Positions 8,502 through 34,279 of a stretch of 64,000 nt of DNA are shown here, in pieces. A program made the translations under genes and the position numbers. Position 1 is the stretch's first letter. Each line of letters opens with the position of its first letter. This DNA is from Oopsacas minuta. Lineage: Eukaryota; Animalia; Porifera. The notes beneath the pieces were generated by a model that did no database searches, was not told the DNA's origin, and was given only the letters and a program-made list of their open reading frames with translations. The stretch covers positions 124,001-188,000 of the forward strand of contig JAKMXF010000144.1 in assembly GCA_024704765.1 (NCBI GenBank), read 5' to 3'.

Positions 8502-11500
8502 CTAACTGTCAAATTGTTCAAATTTTAATTCCAGTTCCTTGACGTCACGTTCCAGCTGTTTCAAAATATTAATAGACTCCTTTTCAAACATATTATTCTC
8601 CTGAGACTGTAACCTCTCCAATTCGGTGGTCTGGTGATGCACGAACACTTTAACGGTGGTTTGTGTGGCTTTTTGAGAACAGAGGGTCCCAGTCTTACCC
8701 AATAGGTCATTGATTATGTCCAACTTCTTGACTTCTATCTCCTTTTCAACTGATTTCTTCTCAACTTCTTGAACTTTTTCTAATATTTGTTGTCTCTGGT
8801 TTTGATGAGCTGCCTTTAGTAAGGGGAGAGTCATTAATTTTAATTCTCTACAACTGTCCAACTCCATCTGTGCCTCCTCTCTCTCCTGCTTACACCGGAT
8901 ATGCTCTATCTCCCTCATAGCCTGCTCAGATACCCCTGATAATTTAAGGTCTTTCATCTCCAAGAGTCTCTCCTTCTGCCCTTGTAACTTAGCTCTCTCC
9001 TCCTCGCCTATCCTCCGTGTCTGTCCCTTGACAACCTTTTGAATTTCTTTATCATAGTTAGATGTAATATCTCTTATCCTTTTGTCTCTGTCCTGTTCAT
9101 ATGTTTCAATCTGTTTCTGATTCGCTCTGGAGTTTGTTGTCAATTCTCTCCTTTGCTTGTCTTGTTTACTGATAAGACTTTTGGTAGTTAAGATCACTGC
9201 TTCGACGCTCTGGGGGACAATTGGCTCACGATTTTGTATCGATTTTATTGTGGGGATATATTCAGAGTTGAAACCCTGGGGTTCTAACACATTCTTTCTC
9301 GGTTTGGCGAGGTTCTCGTAATCGAATGAGCTCGTGAAGCTAGTAGGGGTCTTGGGGCGTGTTGGGCTCGATGGGTCGTAAGTCCCATCGTCTGAATTAA
9401 CAGATAAACTATGAGAAACCTTCACACGTAGTAATGACTTTCCAGTTATAGTATTTGTTGCAGAAGTAGCCCGTGTCTTATCTATTCCGTTAATAATATC
9501 CTGTAGCTCTTGATCTATAGGCTCTCCCTTTCCTTCCATCAAGGACAGCATCGATTTTCTCTTAAATGCACTTGACTCTAATCTCATAACAGTTCCCTTC
9601 TGTCTCCCTCTGGCCAGCTGTTCAGGGTTCTTCAAAACATTCGCGTAACCCTCAAGTCCATCCGCTACAAAATCTTCCATCCTGACCTGCACGAATAGGG
9701 AGGCTAGGCCCATGGGGAGGTTGTACTTGTCCCTCATATAAATATGTCTGTACCCATTTTGTAGGAGGGACAGGGGGAGGATGCGATGGGCAATTATGTT
9801 ACTCCCTTCATCCAAAATATTAATTTTAAGCAATGCTAAGTCCTGAGAGAAAATTCCTTCAAACCAAATCCATTTCTCTTCATCCCACATAGCTCGTAGT
9901 CCGTTATAGTTAGTGAACCGTGATGTGTTGTCCTTGTTACGTCTATGGGTGTCAGCTGGGAGGCCAAACATCTCTGCTTGAACCATCAGCTCGCATTGAT
10001 ACGGCCCTAGGAAGTGGGCGGATATAACTCGTATCCCACAATTGGTGGGGATAGTATGCTCCGGGGGTGTTTGTGTGAATGGTTCTAACACATTTCTATC
10101 AGTCTTCTCTACTCGGAGTATATCCGGTTTTAAAAGATACCCACAGTTGCCCGCTAGTTCGAACTTAGCCTGATTTATCTGCATAGGTAGGTCAGGTGTC
10201 TGATAGTTAAGTGCTACCATCTGACATCCCACATTCCAGTAGATTTGTGGCATATAGTTAGAGGAGGATATTCTGGACCCAGCTGGGTAGATGCGAGACG
10301 TATGACTACTGTTGTACCGAATGAATTTAGCACCCTCGTGTTGTAATAATACAAGCCCCCTTACCTCAGAAAATGAGGACATTTCACAGTTTCTCTCCTT
10401 CTCCAAACTATCATCAAATGATTTGAACTTAACAGGTTCCACATAGTTTACCAAATCTGATAGTGACATATCCACCTCACCCTCATTGGTTCCGTCCCAT
10501 TCCTCGGAGGCAGTTTGGTCGAGAAGAATTTCTGGATTGGTAGCTTTTCTCACTCTTACGAGATCAACTTTATTTATGGCGCTAGAAGACCGTGCGACAC
10601 ATTCTAGAACCCTCTTGTTCTTGATGAGGATCTTACCCCTCAGGCTGGAGGGAGAGGGTAGCTTCACACCTGGATCGGTAGGATGTGAGGGGAGCAGGGT
10701 ACAGAGAGAGGATCCTAAGTACTTCACACAAAATTGTGCCATCAACTGTTGCTGGTTTTTAGAACAATGATTCTCAAAGGACAAAATAACTGGAGTGTCC
10801 GTTTTCAGAAACGCAAACTCTCCGATAACTCGTATAACCTCCTCAAAAGATATCTTGGTACAGAGGGTGTTACCGTGTGTGATAACAGGTTCCCCGGTAC
10901 TCGAGTCCCAACAGTCCAATTCGATACAACGTGCTCCAAGCAACAGCGCCTGAATATACATTTCCACAGTAGAATTGCTTTTGAGTTGATTTCCAGTTAG
11001 ATAGGTGTTATGTGAAGAATTAATAAAATAGTCACAGAGGGGGTGTGACATGGCACGGGGACACTTTAGCTCCCCTGGCGTAACTATGGAGTTGAGAGAA
11101 CTATGCAAATATTTATAAAAATCATTCAGAGAAATGGAATTATCTTCGTTTGGTAATATTGAAATAGATTGGAGTATTCCTTTCAAGGATCTAATTTTCA
11201 ATTTTTGTACCAGCTGATCATTGACTCTGGGGTCCCATTGGGTGTTATTTATGAACTGGAGGAGGGATGAGTAGGAGAGGAACTCAACTTGACTTTTCTC
11301 AACTGCCAACAGACCCAAAAATATTTTATCCAAATCAGGACGCGGACACAATTCCATATAAATTATCCACATCAGCTGTTCGGTGAGTTTATCCACCGAC
11401 ACCTCGATGCCACTCTCTTCCAGGAGGCTCATCTTTCCCAATACACCCTCCAACACCTTCTCTTGATCCCGTGGCAGTCCCATGAGTCGAGTTATCTCAC

Positions 11501-12020
11501 TGCACTTAACCGTATTACCAGCTGATTCTAATAACAGCTGACACTTAACCTTTCTTAGGTAACAGAATATATCACCATTAATATGTAGCTGATTGAAGCT
11601 CAATGGATTTACATTGGAACACCACTTGTCTATAATTTTAGGGTCTGAATGAAGGAAATATGTGTAAGTTGGTGATACAAAATAGTGCACAGTTGAATCC
11701 TGGGAGGGCTGGCGGAACACAAGACAAAAATAATTGTCCTCATAAGAAGTGGCAGACTCAAACGAAAGAAGTTCCATTAGTTTGTCTAGCTGTCGACACC
11801 TCCGTATACGGCCAGAAGATAGGTCACTCACTAATACAAGATCATAAGTCCGAGCCTTCGCTTCTCCGATCAGAGATTGTTGTAACGGCTCTTCATACAC
11901 GAAAAAACCTTCAGGGTCAACCGTCAATCGGACAGGAGAGAAGATCCCATCCCCCTCCCTCCATTTTTGGAACTCATCAGAGAGTAGTGAACCAATATTA
12001 TTAGTAAAAGCAACAGACAT
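8502..12020 (-). CDS. PLCB: Phospholipase C beta, intronless, 1172 aa
   Basis: PH/EF region, X box (INSSHNTYLTGNQL, ELDCWD, HGNTLC), Y box (SRIYPAGSRISSSNY..CQMVALNYQT), C2, post-C2 YANVLKNP resembling the Gq-binding helix, C-terminal coiled coil. Confidence 0.93.
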   Translation of the reverse strand: MSVAFTNNIGSLLSDEFQKWREGDGIFSPVRLTVDPEGFFVYEEPLQQSLIGEAKARTYDLVLVSDLSSGRIRRCRQLDKLMELLSFESATSYEDNYFCLVFRQPSQDSTVHYFVSPTYTYFLHSDPKIIDKWCSNVNPLSFNQLHINGDIFCYLRKVKCQLLLESAGNTVKCSEITRLMGLPRDQEKVLEGVLGKMSLLEESGIEVSVDKLTEQLMWIIYMELCPRPDLDKIFLGLLAVEKSQVEFLSYSSLLQFINNTQWDPRVNDQLVQKLKIRSLKGILQSISILPNEDNSISLNDFYKYLHSSLNSIVTPGELKCPRAMSHPLCDYFINSSHNTYLTGNQLKSNSTVEMYIQALLLGARCIELDCWDSSTGEPVITHGNTLCTKISFEEVIRVIGEFAFLKTDTPVILSFENHCSKNQQQLMAQFCVKYLGSSLCTLLPSHPTDPGVKLPSPSSLRGKILIKNKRVLECVARSSSAINKVDLVRVRKATNPEILLDQTASEEWDGTNEGEVDMSLSDLVNYVEPVKFKSFDDSLEKERNCEMSSFSEVRGLVLLQHEGAKFIRYNSSHTSRIYPAGSRISSSNYMPQIYWNVGCQMVALNYQTPDLPMQINQAKFELAGNCGYLLKPDILRVEKTDRNVLEPFTQTPPEHTIPTNCGIRVISAHFLGPYQCELMVQAEMFGLPADTHRRNKDNTSRFTNYNGLRAMWDEEKWIWFEGIFSQDLALLKINILDEGSNIIAHRILPLSLLQNGYRHIYMRDKYNLPMGLASLFVQVRMEDFVADGLEGYANVLKNPEQLARGRQKGTVMRLESSAFKRKSMLSLMEGKGEPIDQELQDIINGIDKTRATSATNTITGKSLLRVKVSHSLSVNSDDGTYDPSSPTRPKTPTSFTSSFDYENLAKPRKNVLEPQGFNSEYIPTIKSIQNREPIVPQSVEAVILTTKSLISKQDKQRRELTTNSRANQKQIETYEQDRDKRIRDITSNYDKEIQKVVKGQTRRIGEEERAKLQGQKERLLEMKDLKLSGVSEQAMREIEHIRCKQEREEAQMELDSCRELKLMTLPLLKAAHQNQRQQILEKVQEVEKKSVEKEIEVKKLDIINDLLGKTGTLCSQKATQTTVKVFVHHQTTELERLQSQENNMFEKESINILKQLERDVKELELKFEQFDS

Positions 12021-12723
12021 GAATTTTAATAATTCCTATTAAGTTTTCTATTTAAGCTTTTCAATTGAAATCAATACTCAGTTGACATCACAAAAGCCTT
12101 ACAATACAAACATGGAGAATCTGTTTGGTAGCTAGATGAGCTTGTGGTGCACACATAGACATATCTTTAGGTGTTGAAACTGATATAAGAAAGAACAATA
12201 GCAAAACCTTGATTGTGTCCACAAGTGGATTATATATATATATATATATAGCATAAATGTCCATATATGGAATTAAATAAATGAAAGGAGTGTACATGAA
12301 ATAAGAATAATATTAATCTGCAAATTTGTAGTTTCATATTTCCTCTAAAATGTGTTAAAACTATACATTACAATAGGTATAGTAGTAATGATATAACCTG
12401 TGTGAGGTGTTATACATGGCATATACAGCTGGGATACATCATATAGGATAGAACACGGCAGTATTTGTGATTAGAAATAATATAAGAGATTCTTGGTGGG
12501 ACATAGCAGAAAAGTAGGACAATTAGTTTGATGGCTTGTTAGGCTCTTGCCCTGAGGATAGATTTACTGGCTTCATAATATAACAAACACCTCCCTTAAC
12601 AATAGTTGTTACTAGTTGTATAATATAAAATAAACATACATACAATTCGAGTTCAATATTGAGTGATTATAATAGTAAAATATACGTGTAAGTAGTTAGT
12701 AAGAGGACAGGAGGACAGGAGGA

Positions 12724-15700
12724 CTAGTAAGAGATCGGCTTGTCTGTGGGGTCATGAAATACTGTAGCGTAAGATGTCTTCAAGAACTGAATATAACTCT
12801 GCATACTCTTAGCTGAAGAATTTGCTTGTTCTAGTTTGTCTTTCATCTCAGCAATCCTTGTTGTATAACTACAAAGAAATAGATTCCAATAAATACTTCA
12901 CATAGCCTTACATGCACAGTAACGGGTTTGAATGAATGAAAAGTATTTTCATTCAATTCTCACGTGTATAATTGTCCCATTTATCCATTAATTGGTTTGT
13001 GCTAATCTAGATGAGATAGAGGAGCACATGTGTTTACGGATAAAGAGTTAATGGAATGATGAAAACTGGGAAAGACGAGATTATGAGATAGGAATGTCAG
13101 AATGAATGGTAAGTACACGGACTGTATTCTGAATTAGTATATAATAAGCTGGATAATTGCATAATAAACACAAATAATAATATTTATTAATTAGATAATC
13201 TAAACAGAACTAAGGTGTGAATAATATTATTACTGATTGGAGTTATGAAAACATATTTATAACGATTTCCAAATAATTACTTTAGATATTCAATTCAAAA
13301 TGAGAGTTTCTTTCATTATTTTGTTGATTGGAGTATTTTCGATAGTTTCACAGCTCAAAGCCCGTGGATTAGAAGGATCAGATAATACCCAGCTGGAAGG
13401 ATCAGATAATACCCAGCTGGAAGGATCAGATAATACCCAGCTGGGAGGATCAGATAATACCCAGCTGGGAGGTACAAACTGTACTGAAATCTGCGAAAAT
13501 TATGAATATGACACCAGGTACAGTTTTTAAACAAAATTAATAATATTTAGCATAAATTTACAATATTTTCATTTTTTAGTGTGATAGATTTTCTAGGAGA
13601 AATCTGCAATGTAACAGAGAATGAATGTGATAAAGAGTTAAGTTATTAATTAAATATATAACTAATACCAAATAATTACAAATAATTCTATTTTTAGTAT
13701 TTCACAATTCATTACTGGAGTCTGCATTGATATCTGCACAGTGATTGAAGATAATATTCGTGGTATATCCACAGAATACCCTACCTATTATCCAAATTAC
13801 TCATCCCAATACCCTACCTACTATCCATCCCAGTACCCTACCTACTATCCATCCCAGTACCCTACCTACTATCCATCCCAGTACCCTACCTACTATCCAT
13901 CCCAGTATCCTACCTACTATCCATCCCAGTACCCTACCTACTATCCATCCCAGTACCCTACCTATTATCCATCCCAGTACCCTACCAATTACCCATACTA
14001 CACGGAGTATCCCTACGCTGAGGAACTTCAAGAGTAACCAACACAATGTATCAAGACATTAATCTAGGCGCTAACTCAGTATCTTAGGCGCTATTTGAAT
14101 ATCTTAGGACAGAGTAAGATGTATTGATATAATTATTATCAGAATAAAGTAATTATACTAGAGTATTTGGTATATATTAATTCAGTGATTTCACTGAGGG
14201 TACTCTCAATTGGATCATAATAAATGGTCCAAGACTGGGCTGGGGTTATAATACAAGTAATAGAATCCTCTATTATCCGGATTATGTGTGAAACGAACTC
14301 ACCGTCGTTCTGCATCATCTTTATTCCTCTTAAGTTGTGAGTTAGTCACACCTAACTGTGCTACTTGTGCTTCCAAATCAGCAACATTACTTTGTAAGGC
14401 TCGGTCCCTTGAAGAGAGCTTCTCTCTCATCTGCTCCACTTGTCGCCTAGATTCTGTTCTGCGGGATTCATATTGTCTTGACAGATTTATATTTTCATTT
14501 GTTACTTCTTCTAGTCGTGTTTGTACACGCTGTAGTGCCTAAACAAACAGGCAACACAGCTGTATTATGCCTATTACACATTCCAGAGTATGTTACTTAG
14601 CTACCTCTTCTTTCTTGCTTGATATGTTGATAAGATCTCTATTCTGTTGATCACATTCAATAACTCTTCTCTCCAGCTCTGACACACGATCTTGAAATAC
14701 CTTATTCTCCCCAGACACGTGGAATAATCTCTCTCTTGTGTTGTCGTTAAGTGTCAAATGGCCTTTCTCACGCTCAGAAAAGTCTGTTATTGTTAGTGTC
14801 TGTTTTGATAGCAAATCTTCCAGAGACTTCACCTATAAAATTTGGTGTCATGACCACCCTATAATGTCACTTTATAAAATATTCACACCTTTTCTCTAAG
14901 GCCCAGTATATGTGAATCTTTCTCACGAATAAGTTCAGGAAGTGGTTCCATTTCTGCCACTTTAGTTTGGGATCTAATCTTCTCTAATTCGACACTATTT
15001 CTCTGTTCATCTCTCAATATTTCTAGATTTCCATCCTTTCTGGTTAGTTCATTTTGAAGTGTCATATTCTCTCTTTTCAATTCGTCTATTCTACTTTTGT
15101 ATTCTATTATTAGTGCTTCGAAATTTCCGATAGAAATCTAACAAATTGAGTGTTAAATAATTGTGTCACAATTCACTAAATGACACCTTACTTGTAATTG
15201 TGTCGCTTCTGAGTTGGCACTTTGTGCCCTGGTGTCTGCCATTTGTTCCTGCTGTGACAATCTGTCCTGCAGTCCTGCCACTCTAGCCTCTAGCCTTTGT
15301 TTGTCGATATGAGAGGTGTTGAGGTCCTGTGTGGTTTCTAAGAGACGCTTAGAGAGTGAGTCGAGGGAAGTTTTAGCGGTGTCCTTGCTCTGAAATAGTG
15401 TCGCTTCCAGCTCTGCCACTTTATCTCTGTAGAGACTACAGTCTGTCTCCAGCTGTGCCTTCCCTCTCACCAACTGAAGTAGCTTATTATAAATCATATG
15501 ATATTAAATAACATAAATTCCTATGTGATACTATGGTTACCATAACAGTGGAATATGCAAAACAATGAAATAATCTATAATTAGAACTCAAATTAATCTT
15601 ATAATTATCCTTAGTAAGCTCAATCATATAAAAGCTAGCGTAAGTTATGTAGAAACTAAAAAGACTTCTAAAATGGCGTCTAGATATATGACTGGTTTAA

Positions 15701-18700
15701 TTGAAGAAATACAAATATACAATAACAAGCCACAAGTAATTGACGATTTTCTGACTAATAATACCAGTATAGATGTTAATGAGATAGATACAACTGGTAG
15801 AACACCACTATTCTATTGTGTAGACACATTTGATAAGAAGAGACAGGATTATATCCTGGAGAGTGACTCATCTAAATGGCCTCGGTTCGTACGAATCGCT
15901 GAAATTCTAATCAAACACGGCGCAGATATCAAGAAGCCGGTATTAACTGGATGGACAGTGTTACACGAAGCAGCGCGACATGGCGATATGCCACTTATAC
16001 AATTGCTGATGCGACACAAAATGGATTCTACAACTGACACTGACGTAGGTGGCCAGCTACCCGCAGAAGTGGCAGGCTCACATAACCACATAAATTGTGC
16101 CATTCTCCTCGACTCATACACACTCTCTCTCAAACGACAATGTAGATACGTGTTACTAAAATTAGGAATGGGTCCTAAAATAGCACAACTTCCAATTCCA
16201 ATTCATCTCAAACTATTTTTGAATTATCAAAACCCATTCAAAGGTTTCAAATGGGTTTTGACACCTCAAAGGCCATTTTATGACACACAAATAGCCAACA
16301 AACAGATTGAAGCAAATACAGTCATTGAATTTGTACGGTCACACGCTAACGACGAGTTTGTCAAAAGGAATGCTGACATATTGAATGGGAAAAAAGATTT
16401 AAATTCTGTTTCTAAAGAAGTACCACAAGGTGCAAATTGTCTCCAGAACACTTCCTGTGAGGAACCAAAAGTGTCAGACCTGATACAGCTGATGAATCAG
16501 ATGTACACAGAAGGAGCATTCCAATGTATCGATTATACAGAACCACTTCCAAGACCACCTCGGTACTCAATGGATGAAATATAAATTGATACTATTTTTA
16601 GAACATTATTATCATAGCAACCAATAACTAACTTGAGAATGTTTGTTTTGATACTCTATAATATGCTCATTAAGTCTTGACACCTCTTCATTTTTGTGTC
16701 TAACATCTCGTGACAGTTTTTCCCTGGCCTGTTGAGCTGTGTCACATTGTGTCTGTGTGGTGTTTAGTGTAGTTTTGATTGAATTAATCTCTAACTCAGA
16801 GGAATTGACTTTACTTTTTAATTCGTCTTCTTTTATACGAAACGTACGCATATTCTCATCTGCCATCCTCTCGTTAGCCAATAGGATTTCTCGCAGCTTA
16901 TCAATCTCCCGATGACTTTCATTCAACTATTTTATGTACATAATAACATACATAACGTATTGGACAGTGGTTATCAACCTTTTATACCCATGGACTGCAA
17001 TACAATTTTGAGATCATGTGGGCCCCCTGCTGTTGTCAGTGACCACCAAGTGGTCTATAGACCCCTGTTTAGGAACCGCTGATAAATGGGTAACCAGCTG
17101 CTGTGAAATTTAGCTACACGACGCACCTGCATAGCAACTGGAATGGCTTAATGGTATGTGTCATGTGAGTATTATTTTTTTTTAATATAAAAGTAAGAAT
17201 ATGCACATTAAGGTTAGTCATGGCTTCAGTCAAGTTATCATTTCACAATATTGAACTAGGATGTGTATAATATGGAACTAACACCTAACCTGTACTTCCA
17301 TCCGTTGTATATTATCAGAATTAACATCAAATTGTCTATCTACACTTTTCAGTGTATTCTTAGCACTTCTTAGATCAGAATTCAAGAGTTCATTCTCTCT
17401 AAGTTGATTAATGAAATTGTCCTCTGTCTCCTTCAACCTGGACAACAGGAGTTCCTGTTGTGTGAGTGCTTGCTTGACCCTCCCCTCCTCTTGATGTTGA
17501 TCCCTTAGCATCCGTCTAAGAGCCGCGTTACATGCGTCAAACTCTACCAGAGTCTTCAGGAGTTCATCTCTGAGCTCGGTCAGATCCTGAGCTACTCCTT
17601 GGCCATATGATCCTATAGGGTTATAGTGGGGTAACTAGCTTTGAGGCAGATGGGGGTAATCTCCCCCTCGCCCTATTTTAAGAGCCAATTTAATAATTCA
17701 TATACTTGGCTTCCTCGCGATGAAACAATTACCCCTTACCAAATATGCAGTAAAATCTTAATACAAATAAAACCAGTTCAATTAATAAACAAACAAACAA
17801 ACAAACAAACAAACAAACAAACAAATAAATAAACAAATAAACAAGTGAAATTATAAAGTGTTTTGCTTCTTTGGAAGTTGTTTACGAGTAAGAGAAGAAT
17901 ATATAGAATTTGTTACTTGTTTTGTTTTAAAAATATCTGACACCTTGATAAAACTCTCTGTCATGTGCATCTCATAAGCGAGGTTATCCTGATACAGCTT
18001 ACTGTGGTCTACATTGGACTCTAGACCCCTCAGAATGTTCCGTCCGTCGACCACGTCATCTGGACGTTTCTCCATCCACGTGGTTATAAATATGACAATA
18101 AACAGGAGGGGATACTGCGGAGGGGTCTTAGCGAATGCGTAATTATTTGATAAATTGTCCTTAGATTCCAAAACTAATTGTTTTATGTGTTTTAACTTAA
18201 CTTGGCTGTGTAATTGGAACTGTAACAGGAACTTAAAGTATGTCTTTATGAACTGTAAATAGTCGAAATTGATTGGTCGATGTGTGTTAATGAAAAGCAG
18301 ACACTCAAAACAGGCTTTGACACCTTCCACACCAAAATCCAAGATTCGCTGAGGGGCGATTGAATCGATTTTGTGGCAGAAACGTCCTAATTGTGGCATC
18401 AAGAGCCACATGTACTCTTTTAGTGTCCTGATGCCCAAAATAGAATCCAAAAGTGTCACTGCTAACAAGGAACGTTTCTGGACATCTGATTGGTTCATTT
18501 TATGGTGAGTATATTGCTCCGATGTGATTGGGACTCCATGCTTAATTGATGCTAAAAATAGATTATTCATATCCGGTTTTTTGGCGCTAAATTCCTTGAG
18601 AAGACGCATTTCTACGATGTCATGACAACGGATGGTAACAGGAAATATGTCAGTTAAGGTGTTAATCCCAGTTGACAAGTTCTTGATCTGATAAAGCGTT

Positions 18701-20828: not shown

Positions 20829-21043
20829 AAGGACACAATTCCAACAGCTAATTATAGTGCAAAGATATTTACAATAAAGTACTACATATGATTGAACCGG
20901 AACTATAATATACTTAGTTCCTTTTCAAAGTGGAACTATTGAGAAAGTCAATCTACTTCTATGCATTCCTGTTTAAATATCTAAGGTATAAACAGGTTGC
21001 TATGCTATGATTGCTAATACATGATAAATAAGAAAAAAGTGAA

Positions 21044-21943: not shown

Positions 21944-22189
21944 TCTAATACGGAACTAAACATAAATAAATACAATTCACACATTTTAACACCAATTTAC
22001 AAGGTGTATATTTCTGTGCCACATTCCCGCGACACATTAATTAACACCTCTTATAACTACATGATGTAATAAATATACATAAATTTCTATGTTAAAGTAT
22101 TCCTAATTGAATTAAAATTCCATCTTTCATTCTTCTTTCCTTCTAACTAAAAATAAAAGGTGTGAATTAAGAGGCGATATTATGCCACT

Positions 22190-23291
22190 TCAGCTACCCC
22201 ATGGGGTGTCAAAATATATGAGTAACTCACCAGGTACATTAACAGTCCATAAGATCCTGTTTAACACATATCCCATGAAGGTAAATAACAATAACAACAA
22301 GGTAAGGAATATGAAGAATACAGGTATCAGAGGTTTAGGCATGACAGCTAGTAGAGGATACACCCACTTATCTGTCATAGTGAATACTAATAGCACCCTA
22401 TGTAAATAAGTAACTGTTATTGTTTGTTTGTTTGTTTGTTGTTTGTTGTTTGTTGTTTGTTGTTACTTACCATAACACATACAAACTAGCTCCAAAACAA
22501 ACCATATATGCAGTTGGCATAAGTGGCATATATTCATGTGGCATGAGGACACATTCTGAAAGTATCAAGACTCCTACAGCTGTATGCTACAAATAGGATT
22601 AATAAGTAACCATATTAGGTGTGAAAAGCGGCACACTTACCCACAAGTGGTTAAGAAGTGGTGGGAGATGGTCTGCTATGACTTTAGGCCATATCAGCTC
22701 TGGATCCACCCAGTATACTCCCCAGAAAGTTACCATCACAAACTATAATAGGAACCAAACATAAATTAGTTCCAATTACACACACAAAAATGGTGTGAAA
22801 ATAATCATACTATTCCTAACGGGAAAGCAAAACAACTGTAGATGAGGTGTGTCAGTCTCCGAAGCTTAGGTGTCAACGGACTAGCTGGTACCACATCAGT
22901 GAAGAACGCCAAAAAGAAGTACAAGAACTGTATCCACTAAAAATAACATATATAAGAGGCCCGTTACCATGGTTACCACAAGAATGTAGCTAACCAAATT
23001 AATATAAGTCAGGTATTTCCATCTGGCGCCAAAAGTCTGCCAACCAGTGAATGACGTGTTAATGACGTCAGCTGGAATTCCTTTAAATATAGTTGCCTCG
23101 TATGTTTTAATACCCACGTAGACAGCCAATGAGAAGCAATGGAATGTGGATTGTGTGAAAGGCGAGGCCCGTTTTGTGAGAGTATTTGTTATAGTCCCAG
23201 AAGGAACTGGACCCTCGTCTTCAGAACTGGAACTAGAATCCCATAGTTCCTCTTGATCGTCCAAACCATCTGGAACTAATTTAGTAGTCAT
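22190..23291 (-). CDS. AIG1: AIG1/ADTRP (FAR-17a) family membrane hydrolase, 5 exons
   Basis: Exons 23291-22995, 22936-22811, 22742-22641, 22586-22471, 22397-22190. RWKYLTY (catalytic Thr), FWGVYWVDPELIWP, NHLWHT (catalytic His), WVYPLL. An alternative in-frame ATG exists at 23318. Confidence 0.85.
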
Positions 23292-23398
23292 TCTAATTAT
23301 ATAATGTAAATGCCACATTTATTAATATGTCATAATTACAAAAATACACAAATAGGATATATTATACTCGTGGAGATAGATCCTGTTGTTCACACCTC

Positions 23399-23785
23399 TC
23401 ATAATACATTCCATTTCCCATTGTGTTGGTAAGCTGTGTACATTTTACGCGCCTTTTTTCTAACATTCTTGTCCTTATCATTGTACCTCTTCTCCAGAAC
23501 TTCTAGTATCCGATATTCCAGAGATTTGGGCGATCCGTCACCCAAGTTGTGGAGAGCCTGGTCACGTACAATTGGATCCTCATCGTCTGTCATCTCGATG
23601 ATCCGGTCCCAGAGCATGTCGACCTCCGCTAAAGTCTGACAGGGACACATCTCATGTAGTGCACGCCGCCTCTCCTTTGGGTCTGGATGTCTGCTGAGGT
23701 TCAGAATCTCATCGGGTGTCTGATCGCCACATTTTTTGGGCAGAGGTGGTATTACGAATCTGGAGGAGCGTTTCTTGTGTGCCAT
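23399..23785 (-). CDS. Small HEAT-repeat protein with CPC motif, 128 aa, intronless
   Basis: DPKERRRALHEMCPC, DEDPIVRDQALHNLGDGSP, DKDKNVRKKA, ending GKWNVL. Confidence 0.8.
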   Translation of the reverse strand: MAHKKRSSRFVIPPLPKKCGDQTPDEILNLSRHPDPKERRRALHEMCPCQTLAEVDMLWDRIIEMTDDEDPIVRDQALHNLGDGSPKSLEYRILEVLEKRYNDKDKNVRKKARKMYTAYQHNGKWNVL

Positions 23786-24071
23786 TTTACTATCAAGCTA
23801 AACTGTAATTGAATTCTGTAAATACTCAATATATTTATAGAAGAGAATATTCTATTAATAGACATATTCTAAAAATAACTATTCTATTAGTATTTGATTT
23901 TGTACTATTTTAGCCAATAAATGGCGTGAAAATTAATCATATTAGCTGAAGGGATATTTCTCCGTAACCATGGTAAATTCTAAGGAATTCAAACTATTGT
24001 AACTTATGTGAGTCTACTGCATTGATAGATAATTACATCATAGTATACATTATATAATAATTCCATTGCGG

Positions 24072-24724
24072 TTATGTGGTTGTTAGGGAAGAGAGCTGTT
24101 CTCTAATCTTATTCAAACCTAGCAGCATAGTGTCCAGGTTCTCTTTTGTCATTTCCAAATTGTGTACTTTTCTTTTTTCTCGACTTAGTTCCGGTTGTGA
24201 CACCTTTAGTTCCAATAAGCAAGTTGGTACTTGGAGTCTTGTTAACGCGTCACTGCCAGACTTCACATCGATCCTCCAATCAAATTCCTTTAATCTTGGA
24301 AGTGACACCTGATGGTTTGTCGCCTCTTCGCGCCACGTGGCCAAGTTCTGACCAATCGTCTTAGAGAGACCTGCTTTGAGATTTTCAGGGGTCTCTTCTC
24401 TGAAGTAGCCAATCAGGGCCTGGTTGTCCTGAGGGTTGCCGCCCAAAATCTCCTGGAATGTAAGTCTCAAAATGTGTCGCAGGACACAATGCGACACATT
24501 TCTATATCTAATTCAACAAATGAATAGTTTACCTTGATAATCTTTGCTAGTTCCAAAAAAACATCTTTTGCATCTTTAGTTCCAATTTCAAGTTCTCCAG
24601 CTAGCCATTTAGTGGCATGTTCCGACACAAACTCACCATTTGATTGTACAGCTGAGAGAAATGCTTGCTGACAAGTACATATTATTGTTTCTTTTGATTT
24701 TGATTTTAATAATAAATCTACCAT
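24072..24724 (-). CDS. COMMD9: COMM domain-containing protein 9, 2 exons
   Basis: Exons 24724-24533 and 24452-24072. LLKSKSKETI..CQQAF; QVSLPRLKEFDWRIDVKSGSDALTRLQVPTCLL; LDTMLLGLNKIREQLS. Confidence 0.9.
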
Positions 24725-24872
24725 TTTAACACCTAATTGGAACTAAAATATGAGTTTTAGGAAGGTTGGAATTTTGCGTATTCCGAGGTGGCAAGTGTGT
24801 CATATGGAAATGAGGCACATTATAGTATACAAACACATACACACAATAAGTAATCATGAATTATAGAATAAA

Positions 24873-24998
24873 CAGTAGACTCTGCCCAATAGGGTCACTC
24901 CAGCAGGATTAACCGTAACTATTTAACACTATTTGTATGGTTCTGTTTCTGACCAAGTGACCCTATGACCCTGTCAGCCTATTAAGCTGGGTCTACTA
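24873..24998. mobile_element. Possible degenerate Tc1/pogo-type MITE
   Basis: Imperfect terminal inverted repeats CAGTAGACTCTGCCCAATAGG versus the reverse complement of CCTATTAAGCTGGGTCTACTA. No clear TSD. Confidence 0.35.
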
Positions 24999-25186
24999 TA
25001 ATTAATATGAGACACTCACGACATGATGTCGCTCTGAGTATTAATATAGCATATAGCTACCCATAATTACATTCCATAGAACTAGAACTAACCTCATTCC
25101 TATTCTGGAACTAGTAACATTCACTAAACAGTCTTCTGAACAACAATTGAGAAGAGGGACACAATGCCAAAGATAAGACTCTGCTT

Positions 25187-25229
25187 AATAGTGTCACATC
25201 GGGACCAAGCCAGTGATCCGATTAACCGG
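25187..25229 (+). repeat. Short dispersed repeat R2 fragment
   Basis: GTCACATCGGGACCA.GCCA..TGA.CCGATTAACCGG is shared with 52331-52375; a weaker inverted relative lies near 31361-31428. Confidence 0.55.
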
Positions 25230-25487
25230 AGTATTCTATAGTCACCTGTCTCCCTTTGGAGGTGTTATGCGATCATTTAAAGACTCCAATGAACCTGGAA
25301 GACAATATATAGGCGTGGGTACAATACTGTCCCAGTAGTTGGCACAACACAAGGTTTGACACCTGGAGGAAGGAGGACAAATACCCTCTGTAACTTAATT
25401 ATCTCAAATGAATAACATATACTCAAGTTAATTAAAGGTTAATATAGAACAGCATACCAATGAAGTGTACGGGTTACCATGGTGATA

Positions 25488-28400
25488 TTAAAATATGGCA
25501 TCTTGTGAATATATAACTTTAGAGACACGTTTCTCTAAAGAATGTATAGCATTCTGTGACACTTTTGGACAATTTGATATGTCTATTTCTTTCAAACTGA
25601 GGAGACCTGATCGAATTGACTTGATGGCGTTGTCTGAAAGGTGTTTGCAGCCACTCAGCTTAAGTGTCCTCACATAGCGACACCCTTGTGATACATAGTC
25701 CATACTGTTGTCTGTTAATTGGATGCAATTTGATAGATCAAGCGACACCAGGAATCTAGAGGTGTGAAAATGTCATTAATCATTGATGATATGTAAAGTT
25801 AGTCAAATAGTAAAAGATGTGAGTATACACATATCTACAAACCAAATATGTGCTACTTACCCACAGAAGAATGCCACATTCTTCACAGCTGTATTATTAA
25901 TCCCTCGGCAATATGACAAATCCAAATAACTCAAATGTTTCGCGTTAGAACAAAACTTCTCAATACCGAGATCTGTCAAATTCACACATTCTGAGAGTGA
26001 TACATATTTGAGGATACTGTACTCCCCCAGGGAAGCGATCCCTGAGTCTGTTATGTTACACCCCGAGAGGTTTATGCCACTGAGTTTTGAAAGAGAGCAT
26101 ACCAATTCTACACCCGCGTCGGTAAGGAACTCACAATAACAAAACGATACATATGATAAATTAACGAGGTGTTGATTCATTCTTAACAACGTGACGTCAC
26201 TAATACGCACTAAATTAGTTAGTGTCAGTTCCATAATGCGTGTCTTAGAGTCCCCTTCGACTACCTGACGGATACCAGCGTCACCTATCTTGATACAATC
26301 TGCTACATTTATGATCTAAAACAACCTTAATTACTATAGCAGATTATCGTAGTTATGTAAAATGAAGTAACTGGAACTATTAATGATTTGTGCCATTTCT
26401 CACCTGTAAATGTTTGAGGTGTTTCAGAGCTTTGAGGGAAAGGTCTCCCAGTCTGCCACAATTCGCCACATGGATGTGTGACAACTGGACACATGCTTGT
26501 GCCAGTGTTTTAAGTGCCACATCAGTCACATTTTGATTATCCTCCAATTTGAATACTTTCAATTCTCTGTTTTGAATTGCAAGAGCCTTAACACCTAAAT
26601 CAGTGATAGATCGACAACCAATCAGATTCACGTGTCGCAAATGGTGACAGGTGGCAGAGAGCCCAATTAATGCATCATCTGATAGAGAATGAATATTTGA
26701 TAGAATTATAGTTTGGAGTTGAGGTGTCGCTTTCCCGAGGTATACGAGATAATCAGGTGTTAATTGGACACAACCAGAGAGATCCACGTGGACTAGCTTG
26801 TGGCAGCCTTTTCCCTCTGCCATGTGTAGCATACCCTGTAGAATCATAAAATTAATAGCGACACAATAATGTGGCACAAAAGGTGTCAGTTGTCTCTTCG
26901 CCTTCCTCGTTGAGGGGTGTAGCCAAATACCTAGGAGGTAACCATGGAAACGGGACAACACGTTAGGGAGTTGGTGAATATATTCATGTATGGAATGCTA
27001 TGATTCATGATATGTTATGTCCCCTGTACAAGGGTGTTAAAATATGAATAATCAACCTGACTAGTATTCGTGGTAATATAGTATATACATAACTGAAACT
27101 GAAACTAACCTGAGTAGTGAATTCGAGACAGTGCGCAAGGGATAGGAACCTTAAATTGATACAGTGTCTCGACAGAGCTCTAAGAAGATTGTCCCCACAA
27201 TCCGTGTACGAGATATTCAGGTACAATAGACTGGGACAGTTCTGACAGAGAGACGCTAGTGCCTCGTCGTTTATTGAAGGAATCTCTGATAGATTGAGGT
27301 CTTGTAGATTACGACATGAGGACACATTCTTGAGACCCACTTTAGTTATGGAATAGCAGCCTCTGATACTTAAGTGGCCGAGGAATGGACGACACTTTGA
27401 AAGGACACTTGACAGAGCTTTGTCTGTCACTTGTGATCTGAATTGTGATAAATTTATGTGTCTCCATAGAGAAGATTCCTGGGTGAGAAGCTTCCAAGCT
27501 CGAGACACACGAGCACACCTTTAAAACAAACAAATAAACAAACAAACAAGCAAACAAACACTCACCTAGCAAGACTCTTGAAATCAAGGTGTGAAAATAT
27601 CTTTGCTACCAGCTGTTTACCATCTACCATGTGTCCCTCTAGTCTTGTATCGAACACAACCACATTAACCACTAACTTCCCAATTTCATCCACAACATTA
27701 TCAGCTGTTTCATCATCAGCTGGGTAGTCTGGGTCACTCGTCGTTTGTGTCATTAGCCTCTTCATCCATAGACTCTGTTTCCTGGATTGTCTGGCATCCA
27801 CCCGCCATGCCCTGATAACAGCTGATAGCAGTCTATTCTGATCTATAGAGTAGAGTATTACTGCTCCTTTAGCATGCTGTCTCGTCACGTAGCGAGACCA
27901 CTCCAACCACTTTGAAAACACCTATAACAATATATCATGATAATACTGCCACTTTTAATATAGTTTCATATTGGTATGACATATTGGAACTAACCCTAGC
28001 ACATAGTTTCTTATTGAATACACTACGCGCCATATGGAACCTAATCTGCTCAACTCGTCTCTTCTCAATCTGTCTAACTCTCCACTGTCTGAACCCTAGC
28101 ATACTATCGGTCAATAGCTTAGTCTTGTAGTGAGTATAAGCTGTCATATACATATCAGCTGATGGCTCTAAAGCCTGCTCTTCCTTCTCTATTAACCGGA
28201 TCAAGCCTAGGGTGTTAAAATATGATTAATTAACCCGCGGAAATGTTTTGAATTTTTATGAAATTCAAATTTTACACAAATCACCTCCTTCAGTTCGGAC
28301 AGGAGGAGGTGAAGACACATTTGTAGACTCATAATATCAAGTAAAAATGGCTCAAAGTGTCTAAAAATAGAAGTTGTACCTTTCGGGAATATTCTCTTCT

Positions 28401-28626
28401 GAAGAGTTGCATCTTCTGGTACAAACATATTCCAAGAATAAGCTCCTTTTCTGGTCTTTAGTTCAGATAATCTGTCCCCCAAATAATCCCAAGGTTCTGG
28501 TGGTAGGTTAGCAACCAGTCCGGTTACTAAGCATTCGAAAATATCACAAAATTTTGTGTCGCTGACATATTTGAGTAATGACTGTTCCGCTTCGAAGAGA
28601 TAATTCGATCCATTTATATCTGACAT
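25488..28626 (-). CDS. FBXL13: F-box/LRR protein 13 (dynein regulatory complex subunit 6), multi-exon
   Basis: N-terminal dimerisation-like segment (IFECLVTGLVANLPPEPWDYL), F-box (KIFSHLDF..SRAWKLLTQESSLWRHINLS) and many Cys-containing LRRs in ORFs 27005-27508, 26380-26961, 25857-26234, 25488-25748. Not all exon boundaries resolved. Confidence 0.85.
26898..27055 (+). repeat. Dispersed repeat R1, copy C (inside a FBXL13 intron)
   Basis: Matches 8285-8450 directly and 4823-5087 inverted. Confidence 0.8.
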
Positions 28627-28811
28627 TCTAACTGGTTAAGATATGTAATAATTTTCACACCTTTTAAATAAGATAATAATCTGATAGATCGACACATTTG
28701 ACACCTTTTCACAGATATGTATCATGGGTAACCAGATACTTAGATAAATGGTACAAATAATTGGTTTAAATGAATCCCATATTTTAGTAGGCGAGGGGCA
28801 AGACCTTATAG

Positions 28812-28900
28812 CAGCGGTTCCTAGCAGGGAGTCCATGGAATCCTTGGTGGTCCTCTGACGACAGCAGGGGTCAACAGGTGAATAAGGTTAGGAACCGCTG
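28812..28900 (+). mobile_element. hAT-like MITE, 89 bp
   Basis: 14-bp TIR CAGCGGTTCCTAGC / GTTAGGAACCGCTG (13/14). Same family as 16965-17081. An 8-bp TSD is not convincing. Confidence 0.7.
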
Positions 28901-28924
28901 CCTCTGACCAGTTCCCCAATCAAC

Positions 28925-29035
28925 TTGTACTGTTGCGTGTCAGAATTGCTACCTGTAATCCGATTACACCTCATGATTTATGAATATCCATGGTACCAGT
29001 AATACAGGTAGCAATTCTGACACGCAACAGGACAA
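28925..29035. repeat. Long inverted repeat (28-bp perfect stem, 45-nt loop)
   Basis: 28930-28957 is the exact reverse complement of 29003-29030; extends to 33 bp with one mismatch. Confidence 0.9.
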
Positions 29036-29072
29036 CAAATACGCGCCAAGGAATGTGACAAATCTAAAATAA

Positions 29073-31833
29073 TTAATCAGAACATAACTCATAAATTTGT
29101 ATGTAAGCTTCCGACAAAGAAATCATTTCCGGTAACAAATCCGTGACATGTAAATCCTGCATTTCAAACCAATGTTTAGCACCTTTATGCTGCAAATGTA
29201 TTCTATAACTACCGCCATTCGGCATTCCATCGTGTACCACGTTAGCAACCAAGTTATATATGCCTAAAAAGTCGCTATTTTTAGGCACAAACTCTGATAA
29301 GTCCAGCTGTTTGATCGGAAAATTCACAATTGTTGGATTTTTTTCTGTGTAAAAAATATTTTTGGTAAACCTTTTGATGTATAATATGAGATATTTCGGG
29401 AGTTTTGTTATCTCAAAACGACGGAAGATTGTTTCCTTATTAGTTCTGTATTCCTTTTGGGTCTTGGTATCAAATTTGGAGAACAGCTCACTCAGTGACA
29501 CCTAAACAGATAATATTACATTCAGTATACCCCAGGACAATGTCTTACACCCTGAGATCGTCACTGCAGTCAGGGTCGATATTATGAAAATATCTTGGAT
29601 CCCAAATGGTACACAGACCCTTAGTGGTCCATGAAAGGGGCTGACAGTAACTAAAAATGTAATACAGTTTATGGGAGGGGGTCTAGGTGTGATAAAGGTT
29701 GGGAAGCGCTATCATATCATGAACCAAGCAACAGGTCCCATTAATGTTCCCATATGATTTGTAGTCCCATTCTTATGAACAATATTTGGGTATCCTGATG
29801 GTTTACAATGAGCAACAATGATTATATTTCCAGTTCTATATCTGACGTGATAAACTGTAACACGAATAACAACCTGTGGGATACTATTCCTGTCCATCTC
29901 ATCTCCAAACAGAGGAGGAGGCGGTACATCTAGGGTGAGATACAGGAAGGGACATTCCTCACACACCTCTTCTGCCTCTAGTAATAGGAGTGTTTGGGCT
30001 ATTGGATCTATCTCCGTATCATCTGTTGAATTAGGGAGCCGCTTAGAATACATCTAGTTATAGCAACAAAATAATTAACTCATATTCGAAAATCAGAATG
30101 AATCGCCCGCCAAAATCAGGACAATAACAAGTATGTTATACTTCCCTAACAACCTTAAGATGTCCTTGGAATGTCCGTGTGATTACAGTCTGTGTTTTCT
30201 TTGATCCACCTAACGCTATGTGGAGAGAGTTTAACAACCAAGCTAGGAATTCTATCGCGTCTCCTTGTCGCGTAATCTGGAACCTCTTCCTAGAGACATG
30301 TACGACAGCTTGTAACATTTCGTGAGGGGAGACATGAGCCTTGAAGTTGCGCTTGTTCCAAAGTTTACGAATTAACCCGCCAAATTGTGTGACTAGCAGA
30401 AACAGCTGATCGCCAGGGGGACGCTTTATACCGCCATAGTTGCATTCCTAGAGAATTGATTGGTTAAACATACAGCTGATAAGGAATTACAGATTAAGAC
30501 AAGTGTGAAGTTAAGGCGCCAATTATGAGGTCAATAAATCAGGCGCCAAAAGGAGGTTATGAAACTAAAAATTTCTGAATTCTGATATAGAATATTTGGT
30601 GCGTTTGGATCTGCCACTTAATGTGACAATTCCAGAGATTGAGTTTTGGTGGCAACCTACAGAACCAAATAGTCTTAACTCTGACACGTAGAGGTGTTAA
30701 GAAGTGTCATACCTGTAGGAAGTAATCACGTATAGCAGTCACATGAGATAAACTTTGTAACACGACATTCATGTAATCATTTGATTTAATATTATTAAGA
30801 CCAACTACTCCAGGTAGGTACAAGACCCCTGTCAGACTACGAGACCAATCCTCCCCTGTGTCAAGTGTAGCAATGTCCTCAGGTGTGAATTTAGGGTCCA
30901 GCTGATGTTTAATGTCGGCAAGAGAGGTGTCGTGTATCTCATAATTGTCAGGTAGACAGAAGAACCGGTGCGTGTTGAGATTTAGGAACACGTGGTGGCC
31001 AACATGTACCGAGTGGGTATAGGCGTGAGAACGGGGGCCTCGACCCTACAACACACAATGATACTATAAATAGAATTGTGGCAGACAGCATTTAATACTA
31101 TAAGTCAACGCCCGTTACATCGAAACTCAAGGAACCGCTAATATTAATTCGATATACCCGATGGAATAAGTGTTACTTTGTGTAATTTCGCCCTTCGATA
31201 TCAGCTGGTATTTCTATATCTGTGTTAGATATAACAGGAGATGACAGGAGAGTATTTTGATATATGAAAATGAGGACACATTAGAATCCACTGAATAGAT
31301 ATAACGCTTAATCTGGTTACTTGACCAGAAACACAACAATACAAATAGTGATACATTACTCGGGTTAATCAGGTAACACCTGTAATCCGGTAAATCAGGT
31401 CAAATTGTCCTCTTCATGATGAGACCCTATTATCTCTCCAATCGGATATCTCTAGCGCCAAAATATACTAAAATTAGAATGTGCTATATTTAGAATTGTA
31501 TCTTACTTGGAAATACTTGCCGCATACCAAACACGCATACACGTTGTTATTGGTGAGAGAAATTGAACATAACTTTTCAAAATCAAAATCTAAAACAGCT
31601 CTGTCTATTGTGTCGAGGTAAGGACACCTTATCATGCCACTTGAGGTGTTTGTTTCCAGGTTGTCATTAGTTTCAGTCCCGGAATGGAGGCGAGCTCGTT
31701 TGGAGCTTGGCTCATCGCTTTCAGAGGGTTCAGCGGCATTATTAGAGCCACTTTTCGTGGTGTTAGTGGCAATTGTGTCCTCATTAATGGCAGTAGTGGG
31801 AGACCCAGCTCCTGGAGTGTCACGTATAGACAT
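29073..31833 (-). CDS. USP39: U4/U6.U5 tri-snRNP protein USP39/SAD1, multi-exon
   Basis: ZnF-UBP (CPYLDTIDRAVLDFDFEKLCSISLTNNNVYACLVCGKYFQ|GRG), GLNNIKSNDYMNVVLQ, QGDAIEFLAWLLN, YNLVANVVHDG, WFEMQDLHV. Confidence 0.93.
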
Positions 31834-31961
31834 AAAATGCTGTAATTTTATTGGTTACAAATGAGTAATTGAAAATGTAAATTGGAACTAATTAAGGATC
31901 CACTACGACACAATTCTCCCCAATTTCCATTCTGTGTATTTCATTTTGTATAATTGAATTA

Positions 31962-33230
31962 TTAATAATAATAAATAAATATTATAAACAAGAAAATATT
32001 CGTAAACCCATCAATATTATGACACACAACTACTAAATTTAGATCTTTTGTTAGAGCTAGTCCTTGTGGGGAGATTTCCGGTCTATATTGTCCTCTTTCT
32101 ATTTCTATAGTGTGAATGAGGATTCCTTCTTTATTGAATATCTTTACATTACCTGGTGAGTAATCAGTGATAATTATATTCTTTGCTGCGTCTAGACAGA
32201 AGAAACCAGAATTGAAAACATGCCCCGTTATACGCATAGACACCAGAGAACGGAGTCTCTCTCCCGCGTGAGATAGCACCAGTACACGGGGATTGTCCTG
32301 ACAGAGCACGTAGACCTCATCAGCTGTTAGTTTTATGTCATGAGGGTTCTGAATTGGCTTTTTAGTGAGGTTACGTATGGGTTGTAGAGAGCTGTTGAGG
32401 ATCTGGATTCTGTGGTTATGATAATCTGTAACGTATACGTCTCCGTTAGTAGAGACAGCGAGGTTATGAGGATAGTTAAACTCTCCTATCTGAGTTCCTC
32501 TAGTCCCTAGCTTAGCGATTAGAGGAAAGCTAGTCTCCATTTTGAAGAGGAACACTGCATGTACTTTCATATCTGTGACGTACACATTATCCTCGTGTAT
32601 AGCTATGCCGAGGGGAGCTAGCAGGTCCTTATGGGTAAAGCTGTTTAGGTAGTCTCCTCTCTCTGTAAAGATGGAGATACGTTGGTGTGAGTCAAGTATG
32701 CTTAGTGCCCCCTCTGTAACAAAAATCCTGTTGGTATTATAGTCAATAGCTACAGCGTGAGGAATATCCAACTCTCCAGGAGCTCTCCCTTTCTTCCTAA
32801 CAGCTACTACCTCTCTCATAGCTTGGTAATTGGGTATGATTGGTACCTCCTCCTCTAGGACCTCTCCTAGTTCTGCAATCAGCTGCTCTAGGGGTTCGGA
32901 TTGGTTCCTGAATACAATATGGGTCTCAGGCTGGTGTGTATTAACCTCTGCTAATTTTAGCTCTATATCAGCTATCATTCTCTCCTGCAGCTCTCGGAGG
33001 TCATTCATTTGGAGGCGACGCTCCGTATCGGCCTTCATTCCGACCAGCTCCTCAAACTTTTTAATTCGGTCTGATCTCCTCGCTGCCTTTTCGACAGGTA
33101 GTTCGTGGTACCTGTTTAGGAGAGCTGCCCGTCTCTGGTTGAGGCGATAAACCATCCAATCGAATAGCTCATTGATTTGTCTCTCGATAGGGTCTACGGG
33201 GGCAATTACTGGGGCGTTATAACCTGCCAT
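31962..33230 (-). CDS. Coiled-coil plus NHL-repeat (TRIM-NHL-like, no RING) protein, intronless
   Basis: N-terminal heptads followed by NHL repeats (GELDIPHAVAID, PLGIAIH, GEFNYPHNLAVSTNGDVYVTD, PQGLAL). Confidence 0.85.
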   Translation of the reverse strand: MAGYNAPVIAPVDPIERQINELFDWMVYRLNQRRAALLNRYHELPVEKAARRSDRIKKFEELVGMKADTERRLQMNDLRELQERMIADIELKLAEVNTHQPETHIVFRNQSEPLEQLIAELGEVLEEEVPIIPNYQAMREVVAVRKKGRAPGELDIPHAVAIDYNTNRIFVTEGALSILDSHQRISIFTERGDYLNSFTHKDLLAPLGIAIHEDNVYVTDMKVHAVFLFKMETSFPLIAKLGTRGTQIGEFNYPHNLAVSTNGDVYVTDYHNHRIQILNSSLQPIRNLTKKPIQNPHDIKLTADEVYVLCQDNPRVLVLSHAGERLRSLVSMRITGHVFNSGFFCLDAAKNIIITDYSPGNVKIFNKEGILIHTIEIERGQYRPEISPQGLALTKDLNLVVVCHNIDGFTNIFLFIIFIYYY

Positions 33231-33953: not shown

Positions 33954-34081
33954 CTAGCAGCAACAGCCGCCCAGAGGGCGGCGTTGCGGCTAGCCATCAA
34001 TAAATGTAGATATTTTGACGCTTTCGCGTTTGTAAACAATAAGCTATAACTCTATCAGCTGATGCTATAGCTTATTGTTTA
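33954..34081 (-). mobile_element. Possible non-autonomous Helitron-like 3' end with two hairpins
   Basis: Minus strand: GC-rich hairpin GCAAC-GCCGCCC-TCT-GGGCGGC-T-GTTGC (33987-33960) followed 2 nt later by CTAG then T (33957-33953). A perfect 16-bp inverted repeat lies at 34033-34048 / 34066-34081. Confidence 0.4.
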
Positions 34082-34279
34082 TCCAAGTACTATTTTGTAT
34101 GAGCTTACATGTAATTCCTAGAAATAAGCTTCATACGACAAACCAACTCCCTGCTGACTGGGATTGTACTCTAGATAGCAGTTAATTTTACGGAGACTTG
34201 GCAGCACTGCCCGACACTGGGTTAGCGGGTATTTGGATATTAGTTAATCATATTTTCACACCTTTTTGACAATAGCAAA

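Follow-up and report, generated by a model that had tools for sequence, protein, structure and literature searches.

A conserved head-to-tail gene array in the glass sponge Oopsacas minuta and spliced-leader trans-splicing of its AIG1 gene

Nematodes, tunicates, chaetognaths and a few other groups of animals are known to have operons that are resolved by spliced-leader (SL) trans-splicing. In this study, we analysed a stretch of 64,000 nucleotides (nt) of the glass sponge Oopsacas minuta (contig JAKMXF010000144.1, positions 124,001 to 188,000; hereafter the window), in which nine consecutive genes between positions 8502 and 33230 are read from the minus strand. A sequence-only reading of this DNA had proposed that the nine genes, unrelated in function, belong to one or a few polycistronic units resolved by polyadenylation and trans-splicing. 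The co-oriented open reading frames (ORFs) were borne out: eight of the nine genes have Pfam matches (the multi-exon genes were scanned exon by exon, and their matches lie on single exons), the ninth is recognized through its orthologues, and the functions are unrelated. The array and the region from which it diverges are as follows.

33231 to 34279, no strand: divergent switch region between the NHL gene (minus strand) and a WD40/LisH gene (plus strand; WD40 ORF 34280-35164).
31962 to 33230, minus strand: NHL-repeat gene at the head of the array (Pfam NHL, E=2e-20).
29073 to 31833, minus strand: USP39-like gene, multi-exon (Pfam zf-UBP and UCH on single exons).
25488 to 28626, minus strand: F-box/LRR gene, FBXL13-like, multi-exon (Pfam F-box-like and LRR).
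24072 to 24724, minus strand: COMM-domain gene, COMMD9 (Pfam COMM_domain, E=2.8e-16).
23399 to 23785, minus strand: small HEAT-repeat gene, single exon (Pfam HEAT_2).
22127 to 23291, minus strand: AIG1/FAR-17a gene, six exons (Pfam Far-17a_AIG1).
21044 to 21943, minus strand: PTGES2-like gene, single exon (Pfam GST_N_3 and Glutaredoxin).
12724 to 20828, minus strand: ODF2/cenexin-like coiled-coil gene, about ten exons, host of nested genes (exon ORFs).
8502 to 12020, minus strand: phospholipase C gene (beta-like), a single exon of 1172 amino acids (aa), the final gene in the run (Pfam PI-PLC-X, PI-PLC-Y and PH_14).

The ODF2-like gene itself gave no match in the Pfam scan, and its label comes from precomputed ODF2_C matches on the orthologous ORFs of relatives. 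Of its named relatives, the PTGES2-like gene is closest to prostaglandin E synthase 2. Several gene models are supported by run X4, a public run that behaves as RNA (GT..AG joints and uneven depth) and that was analysed as contigs. RNA-supported introns lie between 25292 and 25456 and between 25755 and 25861 in the FBXL13-like gene, and between 24451 and 24532 in COMMD9; the terminus of an RNA contig near 24017 may be the 3' end of the COMMD9 mRNA. Four introns of AIG1 are backed by RNA joints. The fifth (about 22412-22469) is predicted from the sequence and from the exon that matches Pfam, and it contains a simple repeat (22413-22470) that is skipped in read mapping. RNA loose ends at 20337 and 20430 back the first intron of the ODF2-like gene.

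The run is less pure than the sequence-only reading had described. The nine genes do lie on the minus strand, but a tenth minus-strand gene and two plus-strand ORFs are located within the introns of the ODF2-like gene. Repeat insertions, which had been proposed for the longer spacers, were confirmed in two of them. These additional features are listed below.

17851 to 19137, minus strand: nested gene of 428 aa in an ODF2 intron (ORF; 51-66% identity in four other assemblies).
15673 to 16584, plus strand: nested ankyrin-SOCS-box gene, antisense in an ODF2 intron (Pfam Ank_2 and SOCS_box).
13300 to 14037, plus strand: repeat ORF in an ODF2 intron (from the ORF list).
24907 to 25230, no strand: dispersed repeat in the 763-bp FBXL13-COMMD9 spacer (47 reported genome matches, including the locus itself).
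28925 to 29035, no strand: inverted repeat of 33 nt, resembling a miniature inverted-repeat transposable element, in the USP39-FBXL13 spacer (arms 97% complementary).

The DNA depth of the 24900-25099 bin, within the FBXL13-COMMD9 spacer, is raised about 10-fold. The ankyrin-SOCS gene has the identical nested antisense placement in four other glass-sponge assemblies, where the 428-aa gene likewise keeps its nested place. The ODF2-like gene with both of its intronic genes, the 428-aa gene and the ankyrin-SOCS gene, is retained even in the most distant assembly compared (L057:11820-20782), and the nesting (12724-20828 in the window) is an old arrangement.

The most direct observation on how these genes are expressed was made at AIG1. 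Among the loose ends of the X4 contigs, of which six of about 170 were covered, one contig has 11 foreign letters joined at 23294. On the minus strand it reads AAAAAACTTAC and then AG|AATGACT, which is the start of AIG1. The junction is ttAG|aATG, one base ahead of the ATG, and the extra letters are the 3' end of an SL exon (its last 11 nt, plus AG). The 11-mer was not found in the 64-kb window, even when one mismatch was allowed, and thus in this one gene and one contig the mRNA has a 5' end with a sequence that is not encoded at the locus. The AIG1 mRNA carries O. minuta's own spliced leader, ending ...AAAAAACTTACAG. Because this leader end is joined one base before the AIG1 ATG in X4, trans-splicing occurs in the array. 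The acceptor (ATTAG, CTAG or TTAG at 0 to -4 relative to the ATG) is present in all five assemblies compared, namely O. minuta, L032, L033, L058 and the most distant one (L030 and L057). An in-frame ATG at 23318, which overlaps an AATAAA, lies 27 nt 5' of the AIG1 start. Since the leader acceptor at 23293 cuts off this upstream ATG, translation of the trans-spliced mRNA starts at the ATG of 23291.

Other contig ends were considered in the same way. A break at 24715-24745, just 5' of the COMMD9 ATG, was rejected as a sign of COMMD9 trans-splicing because the DNA runs X2 and X3 break there too; the sequenced sponge was probably heterozygous at this place. An X4 contig stops at 22048, inside a AGGTGTTAA word 79 nt past the AIG1 stop, and continues directly as Illumina adapter sequence; this may reflect either a defined end of an RNA or an artefact of the library. 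The homologue contigs L034 and L059 were rejected as transcripts, as they are genomic (L059 has an intron), and neither yielded a 5' leader or an RNA of two genes.

The leader found at AIG1 leads to a gene family elsewhere in the genome. The 11-mer followed by a GT donor occurs nine times in the genome, against two occurrences in total of a control pattern read backwards, and all nine lie within one conserved small gene family. A similarity search gave 20 dispersed copies, and 18 of these have the donor. The leader directly abuts the GT donor as ...AAAAAACTTACAG|GTAAGTTGG in nine exact copies and at least 18 related ones. The genes share a layout: an upstream GATATAAGTA box comes first, the conserved TTGCTTTAC start lies about 46 nt ahead of the donor, and ...CTTCATAAAAAACTTACAG|GTAAGTTGG follows; the leader classes end in ...AAAAAACTTACAG, ...ATATATTTACAG, ...AATAAACTACAG and ...AAATTTGCAG. 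On the 3' side of the donor, two short hairpins are predicted, one of which is kept by compensatory changes (two pairs with double changes). The words AATTATTG and ATTTTTG in the SL RNA resemble an Sm site and are candidates for one, and the family had no match in Rfam. From the TATA box and the conserved start, the leader is predicted to be about 40-46 nt long. These dispersed small genes are spliced-leader RNA genes in at least 18 copies.

L010 to L027, on contigs C10, C16, C19, C41, C133, C166, C313, C335 and C348, strand not given: SL RNA genes, each copy with an upstream GATATAAGTA box.

SL trans-splicing in hexactinellid sponges is already published (Douris et al. 2010, cited in PMC7986045), and the leader of Aphrocallistes vastus is about 37 nt long (PMC10282587). 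The O. minuta genome paper does not mention trans-splicing or an SL family. As in the hexactinellid reports, a short leader from a separate small RNA is placed on mRNA 5' ends in O. minuta, with many variants and of similar length. What differs from those reports is that the SL RNA genes of O. minuta and one specific acceptor are now identified; the gene family and this mapped acceptor, that of AIG1, are new.

Whether the other genes of the array are treated like AIG1 depends in part on their spacers. Seven of the eight spacer lengths given by the sequence-only reading (128, 446, 763, 286, 107, 215 and 703 bp) were reproduced from the ORF coordinates. The eighth, AIG1-PTGES2, was wrong: an RNA-supported intron in X4 (22147-22230) removes the stop assumed earlier, the frame then ends at 22127, and the spacer is therefore 183 bp and not 246. 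An acceptor-like YAG had also been pointed out before each downstream ATG. Taken as a bare word this is little informative, since in 61 of 70 long ORFs an AG lies no more than 25 nt from the ATG. An AG at -1 to -3 is nevertheless enriched in the long ORFs (27 observed against about 15 expected), and an AG near the ATG is kept between species for AIG1, PTGES2 and FBXL13. It is found at 0 to -2 in five assemblies for PTGES2, and upstream of the FBXL13 ATG at -1, -3 and -13 in three species. Trans-splicing of a downstream gene close to the 3' end of its upstream neighbour was seen for AIG1 alone, and in the other genes sequence signals point to it.

At two junctions, polyadenylation signals lie very close to these acceptors. 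One is the HEAT-AIG1 spacer.

23292 to 23398, minus strand: HEAT-AIG1 spacer (AATAAA 23318-23323; spliced-leader acceptor AG 23293-23294).

Here the AIG1 acceptor lies about 25 nt past the AATAAA and 105 nt past the HEAT stop. At the other junction, NHL-USP39, the AATAAA at 31847-31852 precedes the candidate USP39 acceptor AG (31840-31841) by 6 nt. With AATAAA 6-25 nt ahead of the acceptors, the upstream 3' end and the downstream acceptor must nearly touch at both places, and any promoter of AIG1 or USP39 must sit in the 3' untranslated region or the coding region of the upstream gene. Because of this proximity, the two tightest pairs, HEAT-AIG1 (107 bp) and NHL-USP39 (128 bp), stay candidate two-gene operons. 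A block of sequence, GAGGTGTGAACAACnGGAACTA, follows the HEAT stop in three assemblies (in O. minuta with one change in its last word) and is degenerate in L032.

Candidate promoters were found within the array as well as at its head. NHL has TATAAG at 33303-33308; three species share its TATA box (TATAAGACAC) at -71 to -79. The TATAAA of HEAT (23834-23839) is kept by five assemblies at about -45 to -74, and in L032 the stretch from this box to the HEAT ATG lacks any AG. The nested 428-aa gene has TATAAA at about 19175-19180, conserved at -38 to -50 in five assemblies. These three genes would thus have TATA promoters of their own. In an operon no promoter is expected before the internal genes; here putative TATA boxes stand before HEAT and the 428-aa gene, and USP39 heads the array of L058. 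The depth of X4 reaches its minimum, 203, in a bin of the COMMD9-HEAT spacer and is 12,000-30,000 across HEAT; contig depth is a poor measure, and only this large contrast was used. Among the X4 contigs listed, none joins two genes by the criterion of the read analysis. RNA contigs tile the FBXL13-COMMD9 spacer, reaching just 10 nt into COMMD9.

The comparison with relatives shows how far the array holds together. Gene order in L033 is as in O. minuta. L058 is without NHL (L058:350-650), so that USP39 is its head gene and adjoins the divergent WD40 gene, and the phospholipase C gene is downstream of ODF2 there too. L032 is without USP39 in its place, and an inverted copy of NHL separates its COMMD9 from HEAT (L032:8015-9274). 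The divergent layout beside the WD40 gene recurs in L032, L033 and L058. The most distant assembly carries HEAT on a separate contig with different neighbours; there, AIG1 lies behind a distant NHL-like gene (33% identity; L057:1-511), PTGES2 is 6.8 kb further on, and only PTGES2-ODF2 with its nested genes is retained. Linkage and order are therefore kept in L033, largely kept in L032 and L058, and broken in the distant assembly. The NHL gene is unstable between species, being lost, duplicated and inverted, or replaced.

Co-orientation of this extent is not exceptional. With the 16,340 genes of the published annotation, about 32 runs of at least nine same-strand genes are expected under random orientation, and a run of nine alone is thus not significant. 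In a 258-kb sample of contig C144, neighbouring long ORFs are on the same strand in 60-70% of pairs. The counts are 23 same against 10 opposite (p=0.035) for ORFs of at least 250 aa and 28 against 19 (p=0.24) for those of at least 200 aa, in a test that takes ORFs as a proxy, is weak and is inflated by multi-exon genes. The whole window consists of alternating one-way gene blocks, and the array as a whole is ordinary for the O. minuta genome.

Taken together, we favour, with some reserve, the reading that several transcription units, and not one operon, make up this conserved array of unrelated genes lying head to tail. The layout is operon-like and the operon proposal is partly supported, while polycistronic transcription is unproven. 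The trans-splicing in that proposal was found at AIG1; its polycistronic units sit poorly with the lack of a gene-bridging contig among those listed, with the conserved TATA boxes and with the breakage of the array in relatives. According to the favoured reading, NHL, HEAT and the nested 428-aa gene would initiate from their own TATA promoters. The remaining genes would probably use small TATA-less promoters in or near the spacers, with short outrons removed by trans-splicing, and PTGES2, FBXL13, COMMD9, ODF2 and USP39 would probably have the same type of acceptor as AIG1 just 5' of the ATG. Co-orientation would be a general habit of the O. minuta genome, inherited with synteny, and trans-splicing may render read-through from an upstream neighbour harmless.

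Several points weigh against a set of separate units. RNA covers the whole of the 763-bp FBXL13-COMMD9 spacer at depths like those of FBXL13 exons. The gap between AATAAA and acceptor (about 25 nt at AIG1, 6 nt at USP39) leaves no room for a promoter there. All promoters proposed here rest on sequence conservation, and leader use is read from six of about 170 loose ends in X4. AT-rich spacers readily yield TATA-like words, and TATAAA may double as a polyadenylation signal.

It is possible, although we think it rather unlikely, that the array instead holds a few true small operons, such as HEAT-AIG1(-PTGES2-ODF2), NHL-USP39 and FBXL13-COMMD9, each transcribed from the promoter of its first gene and resolved by cleavage and polyadenylation together with SL trans-splicing. 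The position of the AIG1 acceptor, 1 nt before the ATG, 107 bp past the HEAT stop and about 25 nt past an AATAAA, is what such a unit would have, and so is the candidate USP39 acceptor 6 nt after its AATAAA. The TATA-bearing genes NHL and HEAT are exactly the proposed first genes, and both the depth minimum and the inverted insertion in L032 fall at the proposed COMMD9/HEAT unit boundary. All five assemblies keep an AG directly at the ATG of AIG1 and of PTGES2, and RNA tiles the FBXL13-COMMD9 spacer. However, two genes are bridged by none of the contigs listed, and USP39 serves as a head gene in L058. The linkage of HEAT and AIG1 is lost in the most distant assembly, in which AIG1, with its acceptor unchanged, has another gene in front of it. 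Conserved motif clusters at the 5' ends of AIG1 and PTGES2 also speak against these units, as does the apparent depth of PTGES2 and ODF2, which by this weak measure exceeds that of the upstream AIG1. That HEAT-AIG1, and perhaps NHL-USP39, are genuine two-gene operons with almost touching sites like those of the Caenorhabditis elegans SL1 type is a narrower claim, and we regard it as doubtful.

A purely historical or chance co-orientation, in which trans-splicing has nothing to do with the layout and the genes are fully independent with no read-through, is improbable. The number of runs of at least nine expected in 16,340 genes (about 32) and the modest orientation bias (23:10, p=0.035, or 28:19, p=0.24) would both allow it; it does not account for polyadenylation signals almost touching acceptors at two junctions, nor for an order that is kept, wholly or in part, in four other assemblies. 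Finally, a single kinetoplastid-like polycistronic unit running through all 25 kb from the divergent region at 33.3-34.2 kb would explain the nine genes on one strand diverging from one switch region and the acceptor-like sites ahead of every ATG, but is highly improbable in view of the conserved putative internal TATA promoters, the RNA depth difference of about 150-fold between the COMMD9-HEAT spacer and HEAT, the opposite-strand gene inside the run, the inverted gene in the middle of the L032 array and the genes lost or moved in relatives.

The favoured reading of several transcription units can be set beside known polycistronic systems. Operons of C. elegans include an SL2 type with spacers of about 100 nt and an SL1 type with adjoining polyadenylation and trans-splice sites. 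Like them, the array has co-oriented genes of unrelated function, two junctions with spacers of about 100-130 bp, and an acceptor by the ATG with a polyadenylation signal close to it. Unlike them, it includes several internal genes with putative TATA boxes, its linkage is lost in a distant relative, and co-transcription is here a candidate reading only; nor is any leader class specialised for downstream genes known in O. minuta. The operons of tunicates (Ciona and Oikopleura) share with O. minuta a compact animal genome, a single leader family and intercistronic regions that are short or absent. What differs is that the spacers of the array are mostly 183-763 bp and repeat-bearing, and that co-transcription again has the standing of a candidate. 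Kinetoplastid units resemble the array as long one-way blocks that start from switch regions, with trans-splicing coupled to polyadenylation. In contrast to them, the array genes have cis-introns, individual candidate TATA boxes, nested genes on the opposite strand and uneven RNA levels. Transcription in kinetoplastids starts only at strand-switch regions, and the predicted internal TATA boxes, the nested antisense gene and the uneven depth do not agree with such a pattern.

The earlier remark that operons are undescribed in sponges agrees with the literature, in which they are not reported (PMC7986045). If true, the two-gene operons would be the first shown in a sponge, and one of the earliest-branching animal lineages would join those in which trans-splicing, genome compaction and operons are linked. 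The present analysis supplies the leader sequence of O. minuta, the gene family that encodes it and one mapped acceptor, and the HEAT-AIG1 junction is a good place to look. A per-junction comparison over five assemblies and a corrected AIG1 model are added to these.

Two over-represented motifs were observed in the window. AGGTGTKAA, which resembles a T-box half-site, occurs 56 times on both strands against 1.66 expected, and TAGTTCC (extended form WTAGTTCCAnWT) 66 times against 8.4. Each of the two is present on either strand, in coding sequence as well as in spacers and introns, with no flanking repeat and no fixed distance to an ATG or stop. Both are dense in C144:1-240 kb and nearly absent from the sampled pieces of 248-438 kb (L037-L046 against L047-L056), and both are dense at the syntenic loci of relatives (L032, L033, L058 and L057), not at unrelated loci of other sponges. 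AGGTGTKAA looks like a domain-specific DNA motif. As a promoter word it was rejected, since it is enriched everywhere including coding sequence, and AGGTGT, GTGTC and GTGGCA were rejected because they show no enrichment in spacers over coding sequence.

TAGTTCC often lies less than 100 nt from gene starts (examples are at 20899-20938, 21932-21958, 23229-23278, 24739-24745 and 31884-31890), is sparser in convergent spacers than in divergent or tandem ones, and in several species forms clusters at the 5' ends of both AIG1 and PTGES2. In L033, an AIG1 intron holds a 37-bp tandem array bearing it (L033:11231-11821). As a general core-promoter motif it was rejected, since its concentration 5' of ATGs is just modest and its distribution is regional. 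Near the start of the same contig, long ORFs with identical upstream sequences were seen in two pairs of pieces, L037 and L039 (C144:1-10000 and 40001-50000) and L038 and L040 (20001-30000 and 60001-70000), which suggests a segmental duplication about 40 kb apart.

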